This document shows positions 12,301-31,800 of a stretch of 64,000 nt of DNA, in pieces (the stretch's first letter is position 1; every line of letters starts with the position of its first letter). The notes below the pieces were generated by a model. The model was not told the origin of the DNA and made no database searches. It was given only the letters and a program-made list of their open reading frames with translations. This DNA is from Tubulanus polymorphus (Eukaryota > Animalia > Nemertea), in the NCBI RefSeq assembly GCF_964204645.1, contig NC_134035.1, positions 6,843,101 through 6,907,100 on the forward strand, written 5' to 3'. A program made the translations under genes and the position numbers.

Positions 12301-13411
12301 TTTTTTGCCCACTTGGGACTTTAGTCCCAGCGGGCTATTGCGTTCACTTTTCGTCCGTCGTCCGTTCGTCCATTCGTAGACGGAATCCAGTTATTTTGGG
12401 AAGTTTTGAAGATGCTTCAAGGTAATGTCTTGATATTTGGTTTATACATGTATCTACACTAGACACATCTTCAGCCCAAAAACTGGCCCTGTGAGAATCA
12501 AGATGGCCGACTGGCAGCCATTGTTGTTCGTCTAAATCAGCACTTTTTACACTTTTTGAACTTTTTGAGGGAAATTTTTAAGACACTCAAATCAATTACC
12601 TTGATCTTTCGTATATATTTGAATCCCCCAAGGGCCCATCACCATACAAAAAATTGGGTCGATCGGACTCAAGATGGCCGTCCTATGACCTTTTTAGTGC
12701 CCAAAAATGTCAATTTTTGCCCAAATTCTGTCCTGTAGCTTACTACTGGTTTGCCATTTCTCATTGCAATTTGTGCAGGGTATTCTTTGGAAAGGGATGT
12801 TTTATACCTGAGCCAGGTATTTTTGATCGACCATTTATGACGCAATTGGCGGCCATCTTGGTATCATCAGTACTCATTCATAGGTGGAAAAAAGTTTTTC
12901 CACATTATATTGATACCTAAACATATTTTGTTACCACAATCAATTGCAAAGTTGTAGCTCGTGACATCGTCTATGATTGTGGTGAGTTTTAAGGGCATTA
13001 GCTATTCTATCTGGTCACCAGGGGGCATTGGATAGTAGAATAACTTAGTATTTCCTTATTAGATTGGTACCTAGGCATATTTTGTTACCATGATCAATTG
13101 CACAGTTGTATTTTATGACATGTTCTATTATTGTTGTGAGTTTCAAGGTCATTGGGTTTTGCATATGGTCCCCTGGGGACATTGAATAGTAGAATTACTT
13201 CGTATTTCCATATTAAATAGGTAACGAGGCATATTTTCTTATCACAATCGATTACAAAATCGTAGCTGCTGACATGTTCTATGATTGTAGTGAGTTTCAA
13301 GGTCATTGGTTTTTGTATATGGTCACCAGACGGCGTTGAATATTGAAATTGTTAGATTGTTGAGCATTGGAAACCACTTCCCAAGTGGGCATGGTGTCCC
13401 TGGACCCCTAG
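12301..13411 (+). mobile_element. Complete Helentron-associated non-autonomous element (HINE/DINE-1-like), family A
   Basis: Inserted in a T-run, splitting transposase QQLK|KMIRS; 12-bp subterminal IRs GCCCACTTGGGA (12307) and TCCCAAGTGGGC (13379); 5' hairpin; (GTCC)n-like microsatellite; three ~150-bp tandem units; 3' stem-loop then CTAGTT. Confidence 0.88.
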
Positions 13412-14552
13412 TTTCAATTGTTGCATGTAATTTTCAAATCCAAAAGCGCTATAACTGTCAGGGTTACCAAGATTTCTGACGTCATGGCATAAATGAACAA
13501 GCCCATGCAAATTATATAGATATATCTCTGGTCCATACAGCACGGCAGTTTGCTTCACAAAGTAAACAAGCAGTTGACTTGCATAATCATTATGTTCAAG
13601 TGACAGAGTTGGAGATATTAAAATTCGTGTTGCAACTGTCAGACACAAAAAGTGTTCATATGAATCCTGTTTAAGGATGCCTTTTAAAACAAGTGGCCCT
13701 GTATACAACAAAAATTGGCGATCGTCTGTCGCTTTCCAGAATTACAGCTGCATGAGTGACCGTAACCTACGCTGGAAAATCTGAGTCGTAATAATGGCGG
13801 AGTTCTATCAAACGTGCGCCTATCACAGCACATTGTTGCATGGACATTTTAACTTGACGCTTTCCATCTCTCCACAGTAATAGCGACGCTTCATTCCCCC
13901 AGACAAACAAGATGCATATTATCCATCGGAAATGCATCCACCATATCAATATTTAGTTCTAAAAGCGAAGTGTCACCACGATGATGATCTTCTTGAGTCT
14001 GGTTTCTAAATGTTTCATTAGTTCTCAGTGTCAAATTATCAGGTCCAGGGGAAGTCATCCTACCATCCCACACACCACGTTACGTACACTTATCGCATCC
14101 ATTATAACCAGTATGCCCTATTATGCATTTAATAAATGCTTTTGCAGGTGCATCACATACAACAAACTTGCATTGACCTTTTAATGCCCTGTCATGCAAT
14201 ACAATTCCTTCCAGGATAACCTGCTCAAATTCTGCAACGAACTCCGATAAAAAATCAAGATTAAAAGGTTTCGAATTCCCGCATGTTAACACAGCTGGAA
14301 AAACTATGTACTGCCCGAAGTTTAAAATTGCACAAAGTACGGGCCTAAGCGACAGCTGAGAGCTCTTAAACAACGGCAAACCATCAACATTCACACCAAT
14401 TTCAATTGTTTCAATCAAATTTACATGATGCAGCGGCAATCTATTTAAAGTTTCTTTCAGTTGATCTTCAAAACCAAAGAAATGATAATGCATACCAGAA
14501 ATCTGTCTTAGCATGATAGAACGGATTGTTTTCATCAAGGTTCTTGCTGATC

Positions 14553-14832
14553 TAATAATAATAATAATAAACACGAATTTGTATAGCGCCTCTTTCCATG
14601 TCCCTGTGTACAAAGTTCAGCTGCGCTGTCAAACCTGATTATTATTACCCAGCTTCTGTTACCATTCCATAGCAGTCTTACTCTCCCTGGGGAGATACAA
14701 CACCGATCAGCAAATCACGATCAGGCGTCGTCAGCCAGTAGCAAGTGTGAATTAATGCCTTGCCTAAGGACACTACAGCATAGCCGGGGTTCGAACACTG
14801 GACATCTCGATTGAGAAGCCAACGCCTTAACC
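14553..14832 (-). mobile_element. tRNA-derived SINE with (ATT)n tail
   Basis: Minus strand: GGCGTGGCCTAAAGGTTAAGGCG (A box), GTTCGAACCCC (B box), GTGTCCTTAGGCAAGGCA core, GCGCTATACAAAT then (ATT)n; splits transposase HPNLP|RSARTL. Confidence 0.8.
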
Positions 14833-16362: not shown

Positions 16363-18432
16363 CAAGGTTCCTACAATTCCTGGTATCCGGAATTCAAGGA
16401 TTTTTTAAGGAGTAATTTTCGAAATTCAAGGAGGTTTTCGTGGTCATATATAAGGAAAAAAAGTCGAAAATTCAAAAACAAAATCCACGTTTTTCACAAA
16501 TTTAGATCAGTTGTTGTGTGTGCCGTTTTGGTTTTTACATGTTTAAATGTTTTTAATCTCACAATGGCGCCCGTCTCTGCCGATTTGGCGCACGTCAATG
16601 GTGCAGCGCTAGCGGCCTTGTTCAGCGGCGTCGCCTATTTGTCCAATGGAATTCTACAGCATTCATATCATTCATACCCAAAATCACCTATATAACATAA
16701 CGAATCCCATACTACACTAATGAAAGTCATAACTGAGTTTTTAAATCCTTAAGTTCTCCTTCAACAGTAGATAGTTCGCTCTCTTTTTGAACTGCATGCC
16801 TTCGGAAGGCATTAGATTGCATCAATAACGACATTGCATTTTTCGCTTCCGCATCAGTAGCATGTTTATCGGCCTTATTTTTAAGTTGCTTATATCATAT
16901 TCAAGACGTCGTTTCTTGGTAACTAATTCACTTATATCACTTTCAAGTCTCTTTCATTTGTTGCCTCTTTCGCTCGCATCTTTCTTTCTCTTCTCTTCTA
17001 AATATATGTTGTACATATTTCTCGCTGAACTACAGCTCGCGACAAGTTCTTTAGAAACTACACAATTTTCGATACCACCAACAGCGCGTAGGTGATCATT
17101 GACTATCCACTCCGATACAAGTGTCTTTTCACTTAGATTTGTCCGAGTGACCTAAAAAAATCAAAGATCATGTTAGTATCTGAGCATCATATTGTATTTT
17201 TCTTCATAAGTCTGATATGATATAGCTGTTTTAATAAATTTTTTATCAATAAAGCAAATAATCTTTGGTTGTTCCTAGGCACCTACTCAGTTCTTGGGAT
17301 TAATATATTACAAACCCCCATATCTCATCATTTCAAACGATCATCTTATCTACTCACCCAGTAAACATGTCAATGTTATTACAATGTTAATGAAATGTTA
17401 AATCCTGATATTGAATTAAAGTTGATTTTTGGGTGTATAAGTAAGTTGTGACAACCAACATTACTACAACATTCATCAATTCGCACATCGATTCAATGTC
17501 GACATGGTAACCATCTCCTCATGATGTAGATTCAACATTCATACACCAACATTAAACAAACGTTACTCCGACATCAATACAAAGTATTAAGATTCATATG
17601 AACTAAAATTAAAATTTATTGTTGAAAACCTGTAAAAATAAAATCATATAAAAGACATACTGTCTGATTACAATATTGACTGATCACAGAACTATGGGCC
17701 AACAATTCAGTGGCTTTCAGTGCTTTTTTTAGCAAAATCGAACCAGCCGAATCTGGATTTCAGCTTAATCTAGAAATGATTGGCGAGATCAAATGTTTAA
17801 AATATTTTGAAATCTTAAATCTCTCTTTTTTACAAGAGATATAAATGCTTCAAATACCATTAGGGCATATTCACAATCTCTGAAATGTAAAGAAACTGCT
17901 TTATACATATATCAAGAAAATGCACAGTTAGAGTCAGTGGTGTGTCCACAGGCTAGGAGTATTCAATGAATAGGTCCAAGAGTAGATCACTGAGTGCACT
18001 AGATAAGAAATTTTTAAAACTTTCACAAAACATAAAAAATTCTTTTCAAAGAAAATTCTTTATCTCAATATGAAACTCTCTCTTAAATGTGTAAATTTGC
18101 CACCAAACAAGCCACCTTAAAACTCCGAAATCTCAAATGAAGAACATATACAATATAAGACAATTGAGTATACTGCGCGTGAAACCGTCGTGAACTGTTC
18201 GTGAGCTTAATGTGTGAACTAGTCGTTTGAACAGTACCAGTTCGTGCCCCAAAATATCAGGACACTGCAAGTCTCAGGCCTGCTTTAAATAGAAAGAATT
18301 AGGCAATATCAAATGAATCTCTTATTCATGAGAAACCAACCTAAGAAATGAAAATAACCATATAAATTTACCGGTAAGCTGAAGGGAAGGCCGACTCAAT
18401 GACTCAATGATGTCGTTCATTCATTTCCTTAA

Positions 18433-19659: not shown

Positions 19660-22600
19660 TTACTTTCTACCACCCCCTCCACGGCGGTCAGGAGCATATC
19701 TTAAGTACGTGGCAATTGCATCCCGGATTTCAAATTCCGTCGCACCATATTCCTGAAGAGCAGCATCTGAAATAGTAAAAAAAGAGACTCCTCAGGAATT
19801 ATGGCATTGAAAATATGCTTTTAATACGTAACTGAATATCATTGTCGCTTTCAAAAATGAACTGCTTAAATTAAACTAGATTGCGTATGAGGAATAAAGA
19901 TGACTGCTGAACGTTTTTTAACATGACATTGTTCCAGTAGTAGTAAACATCTGGAGACTTACATTCATCGCTTTCAGAATCAAAGGGGTTACTAAAAATG
20001 GTCACAATTTAGTTTCATCCGGCTCACATCTCAAATAAATATGCCTATTTTCAGAGTCCAACATAGTCAAGTCGAGAGAAATTATTTCAGAATCAATGTA
20101 ATAATAATAATAATAATGATAATAATAATTCATTTTCTTATATAGCGCAGATCTATAGAATAATCGCTGCGCTTTATGTGCCTATCAATCAATTAATGAC
20201 CGCAATGGTAATTGCTTGGGGCGCTGTTTAAGTACTTTACCAGTTGAGCAAGAGTATAACTATTACATACCTCTCACTACTATATATATCTGCAAATTTT
20301 CAAAGACCAGCTTTCCCTTTGATCCTTGAAGGGAAAACTCGGCCATAAGCTTGTTTGACATGAGCCTTAAAATAGAATTTTACAAACATAAAGACATATA
20401 GGCCCTACCAATCCAGGGTCTATCTATAGTGAGAATACTGGGGAGAAGAATTTCTTGGCTAATAAAAAAATTTAGAGATTACAAATATCAACATATGTGA
20501 ATTTTCTTCATAAATAAGATTATTATATGTTTGAATAAATATAGTAATAAATTCGATGTACACTACCACTTTGAATGTCTTGCAGAAATTTTTCAGTGAA
20601 ATTAACACCTAAGCCGCGGTCACACGGAAACTATTTGGCTCGAGCCAAACTGGCACCGACCAGGCGCGAGCCAAATTTGACAAATATCTAAGAGCGTTCA
20701 CCCGTAAATCTGCAGTTGGTTCCGAAATTCAGAGCAATTATCCAAATTACACATTCATTGCTGTCAGGACAATAGAATAATCTTGCGTTGAGATGTTTAT
20801 CACTGATAAGACAATGGCCTGGCACCAATTAGCATTCACACAGAACCGTTCCAAAAGTAGGCTCGGGCCTGGTCCGACGTTTTTAATCGGGCCAAATTTG
20901 GCTCGTGCCTTTTAGATTCCAGCCTGTTTTTCACTCGTGTGAACGCTTGTCTCGGGCCAATTCTGGCTCAAGCCAAATAAGGCTGGGGCCAAACATGCTT
21001 GTGTGACCGCTAGGGTGTGTAAGAGCAGGGACACTTCTAGTGTCCCTGCTATTAAAGAGTGATGATTAAATCTATTTAGTCAATCCTTTTTAAAGTAGTT
21101 ATAGTTTTCAACACTTACTTTTGCATAACTCGACGTATGAAATCTCCAAAGTTTGTACCACCATAGGCCTTTATTTGTTGCGTCTGAAAATAAATTTTAA
21201 GATCATGTTTAAGTAAATTAAAAAAAGATGTTCATGTTTTTTATATATTATCTAATAAGCAGTATCAATTGAAAGTTAATTGATTTACCAGTAATTTAAT
21301 TTATGAAACGTGAGTAACAGATGAAACCTACCAACTGTTGACGGAAATTGTCATCGTCTAATTTTTCTTCTAGATCTTGTAAAGATTCTAATGTATCCAT
21401 GGTATTTATCGTTGGTAGCGATGGATGATTAGCCCGATTTAACACTCTCTCAACAAGCCCTCTAATATCCGTCAGGCTATGCAGAACCTTTCTCTGGAAC
21501 TCTACAAAAATTCAATGAAAAATGTAAGGATGCGTAGTACATCAGACACACAATGGACAAAATTATATCTTATTAGTTGCGTTTTCAGGTAGAATTCAAT
21601 AAGGGATCTAGACAACATGTTTCTATTATTATTTTTACATTAAAAATTTCATATTTTGATTAACTTTCACTACGCCTAAGTTTTTATGCTTTTCATTTCC
21701 TATCTAAAATAAATATTCAGCATCCAGTATAACTTCGTTGGAAATAGGAAACAAAGTACATTTTTTGAGTTCAAAGTCCATAATTAGAAAGGGAACGATA
21801 GAAGAGGATAGGTTCTACTTGATTAACCAAAACTATTTGTTTTTTTTTTTTTTTTAGATCCAATTGTACTTCCACCAGCACCAAAAATTCCGAAATTAAT
21901 TAGAGTATCACATAGATCATTTTCATCTAAAAAGAAGACAGATTTGTCGCCACAGTCAGAAAGATCATCGTTCCAAAGTAATACACGTTTACAGTTTATA
22001 TGAAAATCTTGCAATGTAAATTTAATAAATCCTGTTATTGACCTAGATTGATGATGAGATAGAATCTCAATCAAACTTCGACTTACAGGTAAGTCTCGTT
22101 TAATTTAATAATTACAACACAGCTTTTTGATTATCAAAATTGAGACTAAAAACTAAACTACTTACTAAGTAAACAAACTACTTACTTGCATCTGACAGAG
22201 GAAATCTATCGTCAAGCACTGGACTTGAACTTGAAGTAGATGGCAAACATCTTGGCTTGGTAGATGGTGATGGGGAACGGGTCCCAGATGGCGATGGGGA
22301 ACGTGTCACAGATGATTGAAGTGGTATCTTAAATGTTTCTGATGATGGTGATTGCAGCTTCGAATCAGCCTTTTTGAGTTTCGACATAAATGCGTAATGT
22401 GGTTCCTTTAATTGAGCCGGATTAGGAACTAAAAATAAATTGAGAGGAGATAAATTCAAATTAGTTGACATACTATTTATCATTCACCTGACCAACTAAT
22501 AATGAAGCATAGGTAACTTTAAGTTCTGTTTCTTTGATTAAATGACAATTTATAAAAGAAGAATGTGACAGACTAAAGCCTTAACACACAATTCAAATGT

Positions 22601-25600
22601 ATACACAATATAAAAACTCAAACTTTACCACTATATGGTAGCGTTAATGGGGCATGTGATGCAAATTATACTGCATGAATCTCTGAGGACATGTCTAAGC
22701 CTTAAAATTTAGTTTTTTGGTATGTTTTTAACAGGATTTATTAAATTTACATTGCAAGATTTTCATATAAACTGTAAACGTGTATTACTTTGGAACGATG
22801 ATCTTTCTGACTGTGGCGACAAATCTGTCTTCTTTTTAGATGAAAATAATCTATGTGATACTCTAATTAATTTCGGAATTTTTGGTGCTGGTGGAAGTAC
22901 AATTGGATCTAAAAAAAAAAAAAAAAAAACAAAAAGTTCTTGACATTCTACGCAACAAACCAGGATCCTCAGATTATTGAGGATTACCCCTTACAGACCG
23001 ATACATTTCTATTTTCATTCTGGAATAAAACATTGTGACATATTAAATTTTTCTAAGATGCAGTGAATTCCATTAAATTAGAGCAAAATAACTAAAAGCT
23101 TGCTTTCTAACTTTCGCTTTGGGATTAAATATATATCAACAAAATAAGTTTCTAATTAAGTCAATTTACCCACCGTTATCATCATCCTCTAACTCAGTAT
23201 CTGTATCTGAACCCTCTTCTAAAGGCTGCTTCGGATCTAAATTGAGAAAAAATACTTTAGTTTTAACTCACCAAGAACTCCAGCTGTGCCAAACAAAGCC
23301 ATCCAGCTCCAAAGTGCGAAGTGAGTTTCGTCTTTCTCAGTTTCAACAGACCATCGATAGATATCATGTATGACTAAGAAAAAGCCAAGAAGTATGAACT
23401 TTAAAATACAGTTAAATTTCCAAAGGTTATCCTTTCTATCCCTTTTTTATCTCAAAGTGCGAATTCCAAATTCCCTATCTGCAGAGTTTTGGTTTCATTT
23501 CAGTATGCCATTATTAAAAATAAATATAGGGTGATCACCCAAGCTTGTAAAATGAATTTGACAGTAGAGTCGAAATAAATCATCAATGGAAAAATTATGA
23601 AAAAGAACTGTGTTGCACTTTGCACATGAATAAAATAGCAGCTCGTTCGAGTGTAACCCGTTAAAGATTAATTAACTCAAATGTAACAGTTTCGTCTGAG
23701 GATATAAACCTTTTAGGATAAATATGGACACATAATGAAATACGATTATATAATGATTAAGACTTTCTTATGTTTTCAAATAAATTTCAGCTGCAACGTT
23801 TAATTCAGAGTTAACCTACTACGGTAGTTGTCCAATCATAAGACTAATAGGGCAAAACCTGATAACATTACTGACCATACAGAGTCAATAGAAAGCCAAA
23901 ATTATGGCAAAAATTGGCTAGATTTTCAATTTGGAATACAATTTTGACAAGGGGTTAGACACACCATAACCAATGGAAATTACTAATTCATGACAAGACC
24001 AACTCACTGGCTTTGTTCTCTGTTACTTCAAATGAAGAGATAAAATCTGGATCTTCCTTTTTTTTTCGTTTCCGCACATCCAATTCAGATTCAGATGTGT
24101 CCTCATCCATATCACAGACTGATTTGTCATCTGCAAAAATATGAAGAGCTATCAGTACTAATAATGTCAATTATATTTTGGCAGAGGGGTCAGCATATTG
24201 GATGATATTTGTCCTATTTTCTTGACACATGTGTAGCATAGTGGTCTATCCACATTAAGCTCAGTTGAATACTACTTTTACCACTGAAAGTAGTTTCCAT
24301 GTAGGGGTCAAGGGGTGTATAAACAAAGATGCCTGCCATTTACATAATATGTCAACTAATATAGGCCATCATTTTTATTGTAACAAGCCAATTTAAGGAA
24401 AGGATTAAGTTAATGACCAGACAGTAGGAAGTAATAGTGACTCAAAATTATGTTTACCTGATTTGACTTTGATTTTCACTAACTTGAATTTTCTCCATTT
24501 ACTATTCGGAGTCTGTTTTTGATCCATAGCCTTTTCAGCATTGACTCCAGGGGGCCACATTACCGAGCCATCTACAATCCATGAGTCTGGGATGACACCG
24601 GATACCTCTTTTATCCCCTCAACCCACACAGCCTTAACCCACTGAAATGGAAAGGTTAAGAACTTAATGTGTACATTCAGGGTTCAATCTATAAGCAATT
24701 TGTGGTGTTACATTCTTAAAACTTAACAGCAATTAAAGTTATTGTTAGGCTACTTATCAAACAACATGAAGCTCTAAGAAGATAAACCCACAATTTTGAG
24801 AATTAACATCTAATTTCTCAGACATCTGATGAATTATTTGTTAAAACTCAATTTATCGTAGGTTTGTCTTCTTAGATCTTTCTTTTATTAACCAAGTTAA
24901 TTTGGTTATTTCTACATGAAGTTTCCTTAGCACTTCTATGATCAAATCTTAAATTCAACATGAACCTCAATGTTGATAGGTGTAACATACAGTAGGCTAA
25001 ACCCCCGATATGCCGCCCTTCTTAATATAGCCACCCTGCCTACCGCCAGGTTTTTTCTCTATGTACCTGCCTATGTATTACTGGCCAAAACACCCATGAT
25101 AAACTATTGTATACCACCAAAATCATTCTGCACCAATTTGGACATTATATCGAGGGTTGACTGTAGTAACAATGACATGTGGTCCTAACCAACAACCAGA
25201 CCACATTGGAGCTTATAAAACCAAATATGCACTAACCACAAAGAAAGTAGAATGTTTAACCCCCATGCAGCAGAGGAAAGATGACATATCCATCATTGAA
25301 AGGCAAACAAACAGCTTTGCTATTGAGTTGCTCTTTATCAACCAATCTTCTATGACATATTCGTTCAATACGCTGCACAAAAAAGATGTCCACAATGCAA
25401 GATTCATAAGGTTCATCATAAAAGTTGTCCATATGTTGACATTTCACTATATCACAAACGTAGCCATTTGGATTCCATTCTTTAACAAAAGCATATTCAC
25501 TGGGGTTTAGACGAAACGCACTGTCTTTATCATCATTAGCTATCCTAAATCCACAGATTTTTTTCGAAAACAAAGTTGTATTGTTCTGTTCAGCCTCTTT

Positions 25601-28600
25601 AGATCTCTTACATAATTGAACCAAGGGAGACCTACTATTCCTAATAGTTTTCTTGAGCATTTGCAAAAAGTTCTCGAAGGGAAATGATGATAATTTATTT
25701 AGGGAGCATCCAAACTTAATAGAATCATCGCACACATGCATCAGAGAATGGACATTGTATGTACAGAATGTGTCTCCATAAATATGCTGACTTTTTTGGA
25801 CAAAATAAGAAAGAAGGTCTTTAGCAAAGGGCAGAAGTCTGTTTCTTCTTTGGTTATCTGGGTTTAACAAGATCCATGAAGCAATGGATAGCGTTAAAAA
25901 GTGTTCATAAGTTGCAGATGGGATCACATCACGCAATACAATCTGGCCTGTATACAAAAGAAACATTCTATATTCGGTTGCTTTCCATCGTTCTAATTCT
26001 TGGAGCCCTCTAGGCTGACGGGCAAAGTCAGAAGGCATTTTACCACTAAAAGACTCAAGTCTTTCTGAGATAAGCTGAATTTGAGCTTGAGAGAGTCTAC
26101 AGTATCTTGGTCCATTTTTTTGCTTACCAGTCAAGAACAATAACATCCTCTTGGTAACACCCAAACACAATAAATGCATGTAGTCTAGAGGAAAGGCTGA
26201 TATGCAATTGAACCCTATATCTATCAATGGGGACCTTGCCTTTTGATGTTTGTTATACGCACACTCTCTAAACTTCTCATCAGTTCTTAAATCTTTGATC
26301 CGTAAACTATTGAAAACAATTCTGCCTCGGGTATAAGTGCCTTTGGTCTTACATCTTTCACAAGAAAAGTAAGCTGTATGCCCTACTGTACATTTAACGA
26401 AAGATCTGGCAGGAGCATCACATATGAATGCCTTAATTACAACGGTTAAATGTTTTTCAGAGTGGATGATGCCAGATTCCTGTAACTGCTGATATTCAAT
26501 GAGAAAGTCGTTTAGATAGCTATTTACATCATTTGGTTTAGAAATTCCGATCCATAAAGCTATGATAAATGGAACAAAATCCGAGAAGTACGCAAGGATC
26601 GGCCAGCATTGTTTCCGGCTAGACTTAAACAATGGTAGTCCATCGACATTAATCACCAAATCGATAGAGTTATTCTCTTGAATAAATTGTGGATTTGCCG
26701 CTAGACATTGTATCACACCAGTCTTGATACCAAAATATTTGTAGTGGCCCCCACTTAATTCTGTGGTTTCGATGCACTTAGGCCGTTTGATCAAAGTTCG
26801 GCAATCTTTAGGAAGCTCATCAAAACCATGATTTCGCAAAATCTCTAACAATCTATTAAGCGAATACTGCGAACATTTGCTCTCAACTGCCCATGCAGCT
26901 AAATCTTGATGCAAGCTGGTATCAGGATCAAAAACATCATCATCATCATTATCATCCACACCATCACTAGAAAGAGGTTCAGTTTCATCATTACCAGATA
27001 ACACGACATTCTGATCTAACAAATCAGGTTCATTAAACTCTATTTCATGATCAGAGTATTCCTCAGTATCAGAATCAATTGATGATAACTGTAACTCCCC
27101 CTCACTATGAGATAATAAGTTCTCAAGCTGTCTGTCAACAAATCGCCAGCGTCTTTGGCGTCCTGAGGCCATTGAATCAGGATTACTGTAAGAAAATTAA
27201 GAACAAGAAAGTAAATTCTTTACATTGATTTGATATGATTGATAATCCTATAATAAGGACTGAAAGATCTAATCCCAACGAGAGGGATTATATCTTTCGA
27301 GCTTTATTGTATGATTGATTATCATATCTAAGACACTGATAATTGCGTCTAATCAAGGACATATTGACTTCCAGACTGTCAATTTTGCAGAATGGTGTAC
27401 TTCAGTGTGGCTGTAGACTTAAATCGGGGAAGGTTGGTGTTAATTCACTTCCATACCCCCTAATTCTACAGTTATCAGTGCAAAATTAGTCTGAAACATA
27501 AGCCTTGTCTATAGCCTACTAGCGCGTAAACCTGTGTTTGAATGCGGGTTTCCTCGGACCGGGGTTCTGCTTATAATCCGTGTTTGAATGCTGTAGCGTC
27601 TACACACGAGATATCTTACACCTCCATTAGAGTGTATAATAATAGACATTGTTTATTTTGATAACGGCATCCCACATACAGTTCACACGCTTCACATGCA
27701 AAGCCGTGTTTGAACGCGGGTTCCACCATCTACACACAATAAAATCGCAGAGCTCGGTTCGAACGCGGGTTCAAACCCTTCTTTAATTGCAAGGTTTTCA
27801 AAACCCGTCTTTTCGGTAAAATGGCGTGTTTGAAAATAACAAGATTTTATGAAAACTGGGGACGCTGCACGGGCCGCGATTCAAACACTTCAACAACCCT
27901 AACTATGTTGCAATGATACGCATAGACGAGAGCATGGTACAAATTATTGATTGTTGGAAATTACTCAACTGCACGAGTGTTTTCATATTCAAAAACATTT
28001 AATGCATAAAAAGAATTACAACAAGGATTTTAAATTGTGCAGATATAGTGAAAATTACCCATAAACCTGAAAGAAATCTGGGACTGAGTGACATGGGCAG
28101 ATAAGGAGTCGCTCTGCATGGGACGATGATGAAATACCGGTAGAACATTACGAAACCACAAAGTTTTAAAACCCAGAATAGGTAAACAAAAATATCGCCG
28201 GGATGTTTATGAAGGGGTAACCGGGACAACCAGTAAATGTCTGTGACAAATGAATCCGTCATTGTACCGGCGAATCCAGGACGGTTAGTGTTGGCGCAGC
28301 TTTGGACTTCAGGCTTCTAGTAATTTTTTAAGTCAAAGCATGCCCAGAATGAATCATATAGCCTACTCATAACAAACTGAATTGAATAGTAGGCCTACGG
28401 TCACGTGCGGGTACACAGCGTGACAATTGTCAATTATTAGGCCTATAATTTTCAGTAGGCCTATAATTTTTGATTCGCGTTTATAATTCAAATTCAATAA
28501 AATAGATTTTAATTGATATTGAAAAAATTATCAAAAATTTTGATTTACTTAAACCTTGATAGGCCTAAATCTTACGATGAAATAAAAAAATTCATGTGGG

Positions 28601-28858
28601 GTTACTAAACACCGGAAACCGCATTACTAGCGCCGCCTTTTTAATTTTGGCGTGGCAAATATAAATAAATCCGCATGGGATGGCATGCACTGCTGAACGG
28701 CATAGGCCCTAGAGTTGAGGAAACTCAAAATAGGCTCGAACGTTAATCTCCCAATCATTTATAAAAACTGTGTATTAATATTAATTCTTGAACGCCGGGA
28801 TGGCGGTGGATTAACTTACTGTCCTTGATGAGCAAGAAACGTCGCTGTTAGACGCCAT
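19660..28858 (-). CDS. Predicted 10-exon DUF4806-like transposon accessory protein, 402 aa
   Basis: Hand-spliced exons 28858-28820, 24641-24458, 24130-24008, 23236-23174, 22908-22789, 22428-22186, 21501-21332, 21183-21119, 20365-20271, 19766-19660. All introns GT-AG and phase-compatible, total 1209 nt, no internal stop seen. N-term VIPDSW..MWPP..PNSKW; C-term FQRKVL, GGTNFGDFIRRVMQKLMSNKLM.EFSLQGSKGKLVF, YLRYAPDRRGG. Exon 1 is the least certain. Confidence 0.8.
20612..21013. mobile_element. PIF/Harbinger-like MITE in an intron of the accessory gene
   Basis: Inverted ends GCGGTCACAC / GTGTGACCGC and internal TTGGC(T/C)CGNGCCAA palindromes. Confidence 0.6.
21835..22036 (+). repeat. Inverted duplicate of accessory-gene exon 5 with its splice signals (partner 22730-22933)
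   Basis: About 200 bp, one visible substitution (TCA vs TTA codon) apart from T-tract length. Confidence 0.92.
25256..27172 (-). CDS. EnSpm/CMC-type DDE transposase, 638 aa, uninterrupted
   Basis: INVDGLPLFKSS..QCWPIL, ICDAPARSF...GHTAYFSCERC, FPLDYMHLLCLGV, WKATEYR, YNVHSLMH, SSFPFENFL. Confidence 0.93.
   Translation of the reverse strand: MASGRQRRWRFVDRQLENLLSHSEGELQLSSIDSDTEEYSDHEIEFNEPDLLDQNVVLSGNDETEPLSSDGVDDNDDDDVFDPDTSLHQDLAAWAVESKCSQYSLNRLLEILRNHGFDELPKDCRTLIKRPKCIETTELSGGHYKYFGIKTGVIQCLAANPQFIQENNSIDLVINVDGLPLFKSSRKQCWPILAYFSDFVPFIIALWIGISKPNDVNSYLNDFLIEYQQLQESGIIHSEKHLTVVIKAFICDAPARSFVKCTVGHTAYFSCERCKTKGTYTRGRIVFNSLRIKDLRTDEKFRECAYNKHQKARSPLIDIGFNCISAFPLDYMHLLCLGVTKRMLLFLTGKQKNGPRYCRLSQAQIQLISERLESFSGKMPSDFARQPRGLQELERWKATEYRMFLLYTGQIVLRDVIPSATYEHFLTLSIASWILLNPDNQRRNRLLPFAKDLLSYFVQKSQHIYGDTFCTYNVHSLMHVCDDSIKFGCSLNKLSSFPFENFLQMLKKTIRNSRSPLVQLCKRSKEAEQNNTTLFSKKICGFRIANDDKDSAFRLNPSEYAFVKEWNPNGYVCDIVKCQHMDNFYDEPYESCIVDIFFVQRIERICHRRLVDKEQLNSKAVCLPFNDGYVIFPLLHGG
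27525..27890. repeat. MITE-like repeat with recurring GTGTTTGAA(C/T)GCGG motifs
   Basis: Several direct and inverted copies of GTGTTTGAA / TTCAAAC. Confidence 0.45.
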
Positions 28859-31800
28859 ATTGGATGATCAGCTTATTGCAAGGTGTGGTATAATTCAGAT
28901 CTCTCAGTTTCACCTCGAAGACGGCATGTTCTAGATGGGTTCGAATCCTGCTTAAGCTTTTCAAAAAAACTACCAGCATGCTATTTTCTAGCAAATATTA
29001 TACACACAAAATACTCGCACGGTAAAGTAGACACGAAAATAAACAACATAAACTATTTATATGTAGAAAATAAACAAATTTTGAATTACATTGAATCGAC
29101 ATTTAAAAAGCAATGTTTAATCTAGGTTGAATTTTGATCAAAGTGGCAACGGTTGCAAATTGGGACATTGATTCATCATCGTTATCTCAAATATCATAAT
29201 AAAATATGGAATAAACATTGAAATAGAGCTGGTGTCATGGAATCAACGTTGATATCTCAACATGAACATTGAATCAACATTGATTTCAGGTCGCGTGTTT
29301 ACTGGGCACCTCTTTATTTACGGAGAATCCACGTTCCACTGATGCTTGCCCATGCAAAAGCACTAAAACTGTATGGATAACTTTCCAAAGTTTGTCGTAT
29401 TCTGGTTTCCCATGACATTGTTCGTTATAGAATTTATCTAGCCGTGACTCTTTCTTGTTATATTCCTTGTATATAGATGGTCTGCCGGCAACACATTGGT
29501 CTAGAAAGTCGGTGTACTGTCTAGTGACTATATCCACGTCCGTTAGGCTCATCTTAGCATCAGCGAGTGACTAAAGAAATTAAAACATTTTTACTATTAA
29601 TACAGAGAACATTAATTTAAAGCACTCATTAGGAGAATAATATCCCAGGGATAAGAGAGAGGAGAGAGCCAGATGATTGAAAATCTGAAAAACAAAATAA
29701 TTCTAAAAACAAATCCATACCTTAGCTAATCTAGACATTCTATCTATACACTTCACTTGATCTTTTACCATTAGTTTGGGTTGAGACAACTACAATTTTG
29801 AACAAGGGTGAACTTTGAAGGAGCCTTCTCTATTAACTTGTGAGCAAATCTTATGAGGACTTATTGACACTCGTTGTAGAAGTGCAGCTTCGTTGTAGAA
29901 GTGCAGCTTCTGCGATTTGTTCATTTTACTGTTCCTTATCGCCTCCTTTGTTGCTGCACCAACTTGTATCTGAAATATAAATGAAATAAATTATACATCA
30001 ATGAATGATAATTTACAGATAATTATTAAGTATTACAATTATAATTAAAATGCCACTACCATTTTTGGAAGAAGTCGGTTTTTTGAATATCAACCTTCAT
30101 TTTCCGAGACGGCGTCGTAGCATCTTGCATTACACTAGGTAACATAAACTGTAACGTAAGTCCACGTATTATTGAAGATAAATCGTCTGCTAAAAACGGT
30201 ACCATCGGTTTATCTGTCTGTTATGTTTCCAGAAACGGATGAATATCGGAGCTTACAGATAAGAAGAAATGTAACATTGGAACTGTTGTCGCATCTTTAC
30301 TCACATTTAAAACCGATTCCCACGATTTGCATGTTGGTTTCGGTATTTTCTTTTTCATAAATGCGTCCACGTACTGAAGCATCTGGGGCCATAACAGAAT
30401 GGCTCTCTGCGCAACAGGCTTATTTTCTAGCCAACGGTGTTTTACGAATCTAAGTGGAAATAATTCACATGAAGTAAATTTTATCAAATCTTCCCTGTCT
30501 CGCAGGTGAGTCTTTGAATAAATAAAACATGGATGATAACAAATCCTGCACTTTGAAATCAGCGACCGAGAATCCAGTTCCCACAGCGCCATAAACGATG
30601 TGTAAACCACAAGTACCGATATTGAGAAGCGTGTTGTTGTTATCCGTTTTCAACTGGGCTGCAATGTCTCGCTCGAACTTAAGATTAACGTTTGGTCCAT
30701 CCATCGATATCTGTAACAGGTTTCTAAGATTCAAATCCGTAACGGCCGTTTGAAATTCACTCAATAAACCGGCATCACCACCATGGCCCATGAACTGTGA
30801 ACCGTAGTAGCTGGTTAATACGTTATCTGCCGACCAAAAACGAATCCATATACCCATTTGTTTTCGCTGAGAAATTTTATTTAGCGCTTGTCGAACAATA
30901 AGACATAATCATCACAGTTAGTAACCGAACGCTGCAGCATTTTATGGAAATGTGGAGCTAATCCAAAGTTAACTTAACGACACTTGTCTTCATGCATTTT
31001 GTATCCAGATGATATAGCGCTATCAGGAAAGGCTCATCCAAATATATTCCCTTTTCTGTTCATTGAACTGTAAGAGTAGTGATTATCCACAGCATCTAAT
31101 GGTATAAGGATTTCCGCTTTTGATACTTCAGTTCTAACAACTGTAATCACAGATGATGGCGGTTTCGGTGTTGAAGCTTGAATTGCAGTTGACCGACTCA
31201 GAATAAACGGTGTCACCGTAAGACTATTCTGCGTTGACGATTTAAATTCCTCTTCCAATTTTTTGTGCTTGGCACCAGCTTTATGACTTGTATACTCGAT
31301 TTTCCTCCATCGGCAACAGAAAATATTCTATCGCATAATGAACATTTGGCAGAATGTTTATCTGAAGTCTTTGATAACCAGCATTTGAATTGTGGCTGCT
31401 TAAGCCAATTATCCTGAAATTATATATCCTGGAATATTTTTATTTGCTCTACAGAAAATATCATTGACAATTGTGCAAAGTCCGGGAAAAATAGCTTTTC
31501 CTCAAGTCAGATGGATCTCAAGTCGGTATTGAAAAACCAATGAATATTTTTGACATAAGCTATTACCATGTGGGAATGTTATTGTTTACAAGCAAGCATC
31601 TACCAATCGTATTTCCCATAATACATGTGGGGGTGGCAATCACGTTGCAACCCACGCTAATGAAAACCAGTACTGACGGACCTTTGTGCTAAATTCTACA
31701 CTACTACGATATCACGCACGTCTGGTATACAGATGTTTTGAAGATAGACCTATATTGTTTCAGAATTTGGATATAGGTCACATCGAACTGAACTCGATAT

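Follow-up and report, generated by a model that had tools for sequence, protein, structure and literature searches.

The window analyzed here, 64,000 nucleotides of the genome of the nemertean Tubulanus polymorphus (assembly GCF_964204645.1, contig NC_134035.1, positions 6,843,101 to 6,907,100 of the forward strand), contains a DNA transposon of 11,950 bp that lies on the minus strand between window positions 29306 and 17357 and carries two genes: an intact transposase gene and a second gene, here called the helper gene, whose candidate first exon lies upstream of the transposase and whose other exons lie downstream of it (Table 1). A short leader exon is proposed to be shared by the messages of both genes. 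The boundaries come from a search of the window's own genome, in which all four other copies start at 29306 and stop at 17357, and the extent of 28858-19660 given by an earlier note on this DNA was corrected by this comparison. Exactly five occurrences of the element's 5′ 607 nt were found in the genome. The window copy is the only full-length one, the other four being internally deleted (26109>17911, 26111>17658 and, twice, 26950>17724) and 99.9-100% identical; both 26950>17724 copies (L003 and L004) carry 169 nt of filler DNA, which reuses a part of the internal repeat region (27605-27437). Each of the five copies is flanked by a target duplication of 2 bp (TG, AT, TT, AT, and TT). The element is real and was recently active.

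Short inverted repeats (11 bp) and a short target duplication (2 bp, in a group where it measures 2-4 bp) agree with membership in the CACTA/Mirage/Chapaev (CMC) group, and repeated subterminal motifs, as in En/Spm, are present at both ends, with AAYRTTG/CAAYRTT occurring seven times in the first 200 nt, eight times in the last 330 nt and five times in the other 11.4 kb. An assignment to CACTA or En/Spm in the strict sense was rejected because the termini (CCCAGTAAACA...TGTTTACTGGG, not CACTA...TAGTG) and the length of the duplication (2 bp, not 3 bp) do not fit; the ends and the duplication are presumably nearer to the Mirage-like pattern. The transposase is the only intact one of its family in the genome. 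An exact look-up of its sequence returned no database record. Its relatives, 42-51% identical, number in the hundreds and come from bivalves, fishes, a starfish, and an amphipod. Against Pfam, the window transposase gave only DUF4218 (E 0.014, below the cut-off), and it was not matched even at E 1 when the whole genome was searched with PF02992 (Transposase_21). Among 28 members of the family, DUF4218 matched 13 (best E 3.3e-6), DUF1258 matched 7, and Transposase_21 matched 4 (best E 8.6e-5). The family has invariant residues at D177, D252, E400, C271-x-x-C274, and H475-x3-H479, a set that we take to fit the CMC signature. The transposase is probably a distant member of the CMC group.

The helper gene was modeled with 10 exons, the leader and exons A to I, with canonical AG/GT sites at all junctions and an open frame, checked by arithmetic and by per-exon translation, that runs from the leader to a TAA at 19662-19660. 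The in-frame 10-exon gene described by the earlier note holds in its frame and its splice sites; its length becomes 396 instead of 402 amino acids (aa), and one exon of the present model, 23373-23272, finds no support in homologues. Full-length homologues align collinearly with exons A, B, E, F, H, and I; one of them is the mRNA-derived 389-aa protein P0217, whose contiguous sequence ...KYPLTDAKFQSKV confirms the junction between exons E and F (...RFPLSDA|KFQRKV). The introns that flank exon E contain inverted repeats of 201 nt (21837-22037 and 22729-22929), 99% complementary and with poly-A/T ends. Since exon E is 243 nt long, its skipping preserves the frame, and the repeat arms around it could promote exon skipping or back-splicing.

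By homology, the C-terminal domain of the helper is predicted to be a DUF4806/BEN-like DNA-binding domain, in agreement with the DUF4806-like character proposed by the earlier note. Scanned singly, the exons in the window gave no Pfam match because exons F, G, and H each hold only a part of the DUF4806 domain. The collinear homologues score 24.8-28.3 bits against DUF4806 (PF16064), at or near the cut-off of 25, and P0265 is named a DUF4806 domain-containing protein in UniRef. With residues 225-382 of P0273, a homologue from the mussel Mytilus californianus (model predicted local distance difference test [pLDDT] score 79), the top 15 PDB rows returned by Foldseek were all BEN domains, with probabilities of 0.23-0.99, TM-scores by target of 0.47-0.66, and E values of at least 0.36, all of which describe the mussel homologue and not the window protein. 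A profile of the homologue C-terminal region matched BEND6 (E 0.015). DUF4806 is classed as a subtype of BEN in a preprint and tied to the BEN fold in a protocol paper. The N-terminal domain encoded by exon A folds, in a predicted model, at pLDDT 88.5 and has no credible match in the PDB (Foldseek E at least 2.9; best VIA-align Z 3.3; Tudor domain of ARID4B, Z 2.8). The helper family would resemble the BEN proteins Insv, Elba/Bsg25A, BANP, BEND3, and BEND6 in its C-terminal DUF4806 region, which is probably BEN-like, as judged from the model of the mussel homologue, and it differs from them in being transposon encoded and in having an additional N-terminal domain without a fold match. By analogy with TnpA in En/Spm, the probable targets of the helper are the CAAYRTTG-type motifs at the ends of the element. 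In the literature searched, no account of DUF4806 proteins in the role of transposon helpers was found.

Exon A has no start codon of its own at the expected place. Reading back from it in frame, a TGA is reached after 14 codons without passing an ATG, and at the ancestral start position of the helper, CAG replaces ATG. In most of the best 150 relatives, the conserved Trp is residue 2, immediately after Met; Ruditapes reads ttttag|GTTTAACAGA ATG TGG at the start of exon A, and Patiria reads tttctag|G ATG. The closest paralogue in the genome (C12a/b) has, like the window element, an acceptor without ATG, followed by CTC TGG. A word search with exon A gave no candidate. Because exon A lacks an ATG while most relatives have Met there, an upstream coding exon is needed if the gene is functional. 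The earlier note had placed such an exon near the 5′ end of the element, and what it described there is present: an ATG at 28858 (with A at -3 and G at +4) opens 13 codons that end at 28820 and are followed by GTAAGT, and the exon that begins at 24641, behind the acceptor tttccatttcag ending at 24642, reads in phase 0 out of this leader. Equally present are the elements of the second junction that it proposed, namely, an acceptor that extends to 27186, a TAA at 27185-27183, and the transposase ATG at 27172, with 10 nt separating the stop from the ATG. This acceptor scores in the top 3.3% of 40-nt windows. Joined to it, the leader would become a 13-codon upstream open reading frame (uORF) that closes 10 nt before the transposase ATG. 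An AATAAA around 24889 is a candidate 3′ end signal of the transposase mRNA.

We propose, with a probability of about 0.55, that the element belongs to the cut-and-paste DNA transposons of the CMC group, is autonomous, and expresses its two genes from one promoter, by means of a shared leader with a choice of splice acceptor and a uORF that limits the transposase. One transcription unit would start near the 5′ end, with the ATG and 12 codons of the leader, ending at GTAAGT, as its first exon. Splicing of the leader to the acceptor at 24642 would skip the transposase, supply exon A with a start codon, and yield a helper of ~396 aa, in which a linker, acidic and rich in Ser and Pro, connects the beta-rich N-terminal domain to the DUF4806/BEN-like domain at the C terminus. 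Splicing to the acceptor at 27186 would yield the transposase mRNA, on which the leader ATG would open the 13-codon uORF and keep translation of the transposase low; under eukaryotic scanning, a uORF with a strong start context that ends 10 nt before an ORF should depress translation downstream. Comparison with related sequences lends good support to a nested layout with a shared leader, whose use in this genome is predicted, and a splice switch combined with a uORF is a reasonable hypothesis; the mutual exclusivity of the two mRNAs and the throttling of the transposase by re-initiation, both put forward in the earlier note, are inferred.

Table 1. Features of the T. polymorphus element, in window coordinates
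Feature	Position	Strand	Description	Basis
Target-site duplication	29307-29308 and 17355-17356		TG	
5′ terminal inverted repeat	29296-29306	-	CCCAGTAAACA, 11 bp	Copy identity begins exactly here; reverse complement of 3′ end
5′ subterminal region	29100-29295	-	Clustered AAYRTTG/CAAYRTT	Motif count
Candidate leader mini-exon	28820-28858	-	ATG + 12 codons (MASNSDVSCSSRT), phase 0	Sequence; use predicted
Leader donor	28819-28814	-	GTAAGT	
Direct repeat	27526-27834	.	15-26 nt, GTGTTTGAAYGCGGGTT-like, 4 or 5 copies; inside leader-to-transposase intron	Repeat families D2 and D4
Transposase acceptor and stop	27183-27200	-	ttaattttcttacag ending 27186, then TAA 27185-27183	Use predicted
Transposase ORF	25256-27172	-	638 aa, intact, no internal stops	ORF, homology, alignment
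Exon A	24458-24641	-	Conserved N-terminal beta-rich domain (WVKAVWVEG...), no ATG before Met28, acceptor tttccatttcag	
Exon B	24008-24130	-	Acidic and basic linker	Weak collinear match to P0273
Exon C	23272-23373	-	Doubtful; 102 nt, frame-keeping	No homologue support
Exon D	23174-23236	-	Acidic	Exon model
Exon E	22186-22428	-	Ser/Pro-rich, ending ...DDRFPLSDA	E-F junction matches P0217
Exon F	21332-21501	-	FQRKVLHSLTDIRG..., start of DUF4806/BEN-like region	Homologue alignment
Exon G	21119-21183	-		Collinear with P0273 by eye
Exon H	20271-20365	-	LMSNKLMAEFSLQGSKGK..., DUF4806 core	Homologue alignment
Exon I (last)	19660-19766	-	...YLRYAPDRRGGGGRK, then stop	Homologue alignment
3′ subterminal region	17357-17700	-	8 AAYRTTG/CAAYRTT in last 330 nt	Motif count
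3′ inverted repeat	17367-17357	-	TGTTTACTGGG	Copy comparison

The same layout is found in RefSeq gene models of M. californianus (LOC127722322, LOC127705635, and LOC127701430). The mussel element L072 (6778-23381) has CCCACC ends, a 2-bp target duplication, and clusters of CAAYRTTG at both ends; its helper is homologous to that in the window, and the transposase of M. californianus is 45-49% identical to the window's over the matched parts. The RefSeq helpers P0273 (382 aa), P0197, and P0271 all begin with MAEGNGRDLP|ENSEATWALAVW, and the first ten codons form a mini-exon that ends at gtgagt, 2.4-2.8 kb upstream of a transposase nested in the intron that follows. In three copies (L071, L072, and L195) the models join this leader to the helper over the nested transposase. 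In a fourth copy (L196), the protein P0282 (LOC127722322) begins with MAEGNGRDLP|RSYLRRWR, the same leader being spliced in frame into the transposase at an acceptor, ccttttacag|CGC, that occupies the position of Met in relatives. The reading from the mussel leader into the downstream frame had been computed by script and was then confirmed by P0282. The intact copy L195 has an open transposase frame of 665 codons in which the ancestral Met position holds an acceptor and no ATG. The two systems are alike in their homologous transposase and helper, CCCA ends, 2-bp duplication, and subterminal CAAYRTTG repeats and in having an ATG leader mini-exon upstream of a nested transposase. They differ in that the mussel leader is in frame with both ORFs, the Met of the transposase being lost there, whereas in the window element the transposase has retained an ATG of its own, and the TAA would terminate the leader; the mussel element is, moreover, known from database gene models and not from a published description.

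RefSeq names the M. californianus helper models "muscle M-line assembly protein unc-89-like" (L196:10001-13773, L072, L195, and L071); fish homologues of the helper are called "protein SON-like" and a scallop homologue is called "arginine/serine-rich coiled-coil protein 2-like." All of these look like transposon genes under misleading host-gene labels.

Across relatives, acceptor-like sites are enriched 4-30 nt upstream of the transposase ATG in seven relatives (Fisher combination, P of about 0.003) and 0-46 nt upstream of the conserved Trp codon of exon A in eight relatives (P = 0.0004). In contrast to the in-frame fusion made by the mussel leader, both ORFs have their own ATG in most other relatives. 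We advance only tentatively a family-wide version of our proposal, in which a coding leader would head both messages throughout the family and its relation to the transposase ORF would have shifted in evolution: the leader would be untranslated in most members, fused in frame to both ORFs in the mussel, and, in the window, both the start of the helper and a uORF brake on the transposase. The helper-to-transposase ratio would then depend on which acceptor is used, with the uORF as a further, translational check on transposition.

Several observations weigh against the shared-leader scheme. Upstream of exon A there are 12 donor-like GT sites, 6 of which follow an in-frame ATG in phase 0; ATG-opened mini-exons in this phase are thus common by chance, and the sequence alone does not single out the leader. 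The leader donor has A, and not G, at -1, and if transcription begins near TATAAATA, around 29050, there are ATGs upstream of 28858. The five copies of the leader region in the genome are ~100% identical and thus uninformative on the conservation of the leader and the TAA, and the closest paralogue (C12a) has no comparable leader in the 1.5 kb examined upstream of it, where the lone candidate is a one-codon ATG|GTAATT site with a low score. The mussel models (RefSeq XP records) are themselves predictions. In Mytilus edulis (L073:11975-12000), the helper coding sequence begins with ATGTG|gtaaga, 13 nt after the transposase stop, and the exon A to which this mini-exon is spliced contains in-frame ATGs itself, which suggests a transposase exon with a donor just past its stop, i.e., a message with two ORFs; because the helper start is annotated there after the transposase, either layouts vary among relatives or annotations differ. 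Finally, the TAA/uORF arrangement has no counterpart in any relative examined. The shared-leader reading of the earlier note is partly supported, by the comparative evidence (exon A without ATG, the mussel models, and the enrichment of acceptors), and relatives do not share its TAA/uORF part. A scan for bacterial-type promoters upstream of the leader gave results at chance level and is irrelevant to an animal.

Some of these observations are also those that would be expected if the two genes were expressed separately or in tandem, the helper having its own first exon or being translated from Met28 (MWPPG...), an explanation that we consider less likely. The first exon of the helper would then be either a different mini-exon near the 5′ end, 28979-28914, or one located after the transposase, e.g., 25126-25067, and the transposase promoter would lie within 28819-27186, the interval that holds the cluster of direct repeats. 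The six alternative phase-0 ATG exons and the annotated helper start of M. edulis just after the transposase stop are consistent with separate expression, as is an M. californianus isoform, X2 (P0272), that begins at the internal Met equivalent to Met28 of exon A; the GTGTTTGAAYGCGGGTT-like repeats at 27526-27834, for their part, could be regulatory and may represent a regulatory array or an internal promoter. However, the 25126-25067 candidate sits in a nested repeat with many diverged genomic copies, and a start at Met28 would lose the most conserved part of the N-terminal domain. Strong acceptors lie immediately upstream of both ORFs, here and in relatives, and the Mytilus RefSeq models use one leader for both ORFs.

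We regard as improbable that the helper gene of this lineage, deprived of its start codon, has ceased to yield a full protein, the match of the leader being due to chance and the transposase alone moving the element. This explanation would account for the CAG in place of ATG at the ancestral start, and it draws on the chance frequency of phase-0 ATG mini-exons; on the other hand, every helper exon that follows the leader has an open frame, canonical splice sites, and conserved motifs, and the element was active very recently. Furthermore, the state of an acceptor without ATG is common to C12a/b and the Mytilus family and therefore points to a maintained arrangement rather than to decay.

Very improbable, in our view, is that the acceptors before both ORFs serve a trans-spliced leader that resolves a polycistronic precursor, and not a cis leader exon: a homologous helper mRNA contig (L074, JGI sample 3300032470) does open with a 22-nt sequence that also forms the outermost 5′ terminus of >120 unrelated contigs in related JGI samples, which is the signature of a trans-spliced leader, but the helper exon of L074 has its own ATG, exon A in the window has none, so that a trans-spliced leader would have to supply one, and 0 of 80 contigs with the 22-nt leader (L075-L154) encode the transposase or exon A. 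We know of no report of trans-splicing in ribbon worms. The 22-nt sequence (L074:1-48) is evidently the trans-spliced leader of a marine organism that hosts this transposon family. A comparison of transposase and helper mRNAs for a shared 5′ untranslated region in the JGI metatranscriptome was set aside, the 22-nt probe being this trans-spliced leader and hence uninformative.

The shared-leader scheme that we favor has precedents. In maize En/Spm, as is proposed here, a single transcription unit comprises the accessory DNA-binding gene (tnpA) and, within intron 1 of that gene, the transposase ORFs, and a shared first exon, with the product chosen by alternative splicing, is a feature of En/Spm that is predicted here from sequence (PMC1636069 and general knowledge). 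Both systems have subterminal repeats, bound in En/Spm by the accessory protein, and internally deleted nonautonomous derivatives. The window element differs in its animal host, in its CCCAG instead of CACTA ends, in its 2-bp instead of 3-bp duplication, and in its accessory protein, which is DUF4806/BEN-like and unrelated to TnpA. It would also differ in its first exon, which is untranslated in En/Spm and would here provide the start codon of the accessory protein while serving as a uORF on the transposase message.

A second precedent is SmTRC1 of Schistosoma mansoni, a member of the CACTA superfamily in an animal, for which several alternatively spliced transcripts were reported in 2006 from expressed sequence tags and reverse transcription-PCR, including one that is short, abundant, and free of the transposase domain and another that is long and has two tandem ORFs (PMC1636069). 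SmTRC1 resembles the window element as an animal element of the same broad group; in contrast to it, SmTRC1 has a clear Transposase_21 domain, CACTA ends, and accessory proteins without detectable relatives, and no shared coding leader or uORF has been described for it. The earlier note, which knew of no description of this arrangement for animal elements of this kind, had thus overstated its novelty, given the published splicing of SmTRC1 (PMC1636069) and a nested layout that is already present in RefSeq models. Among the elements examined, only that in the window has the TAA/uORF arrangement.

If RNA data confirm the proposed splicing, the strategy of En/Spm, in which the transposase is housed in intron 1 of a helper gene and its dose is set by splicing, would not be a plant peculiarity, and the same layout would recur, with an unrelated BEN-like helper, in a widespread animal family whose members occur in bivalves, echinoderms, fish, crustaceans, and a worm. 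Confirmation would also give many animal database proteins labeled "DUF4806," "SON-like," or "unc-89-like" an origin as transposon helper genes. One intact copy together with four fresh deletion derivatives makes a compact natural system for the study of self-limitation through splicing and a uORF. For genome annotation, the layout draws attention to loci at which a very short first coding exon, located kilobases upstream, is common to two proteins.

The surroundings and the noncoding parts of the element contain further repeats. About 3 kb past the 3′ end, on the same strand, window positions 13394-14553 contain two decayed pieces of a related transposase, 35-41% identical and interrupted by stop codons. 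At the 5′ end, the element interrupts an ORF in 29307-29552 that ends in ...HGQASVERGFSVNKE (SVERGFS motif) and resembles the C terminus of a hAT transposase, a resemblance for which Pfam gave no confirmation. Within the element, four short stretches located in helper introns and past the transposase stop codon (20853-21010, 25000-25167, 20099-20176, and 22046-22117) have many counterparts elsewhere in the genome, 72-96% identical, and look like small nested repeats.

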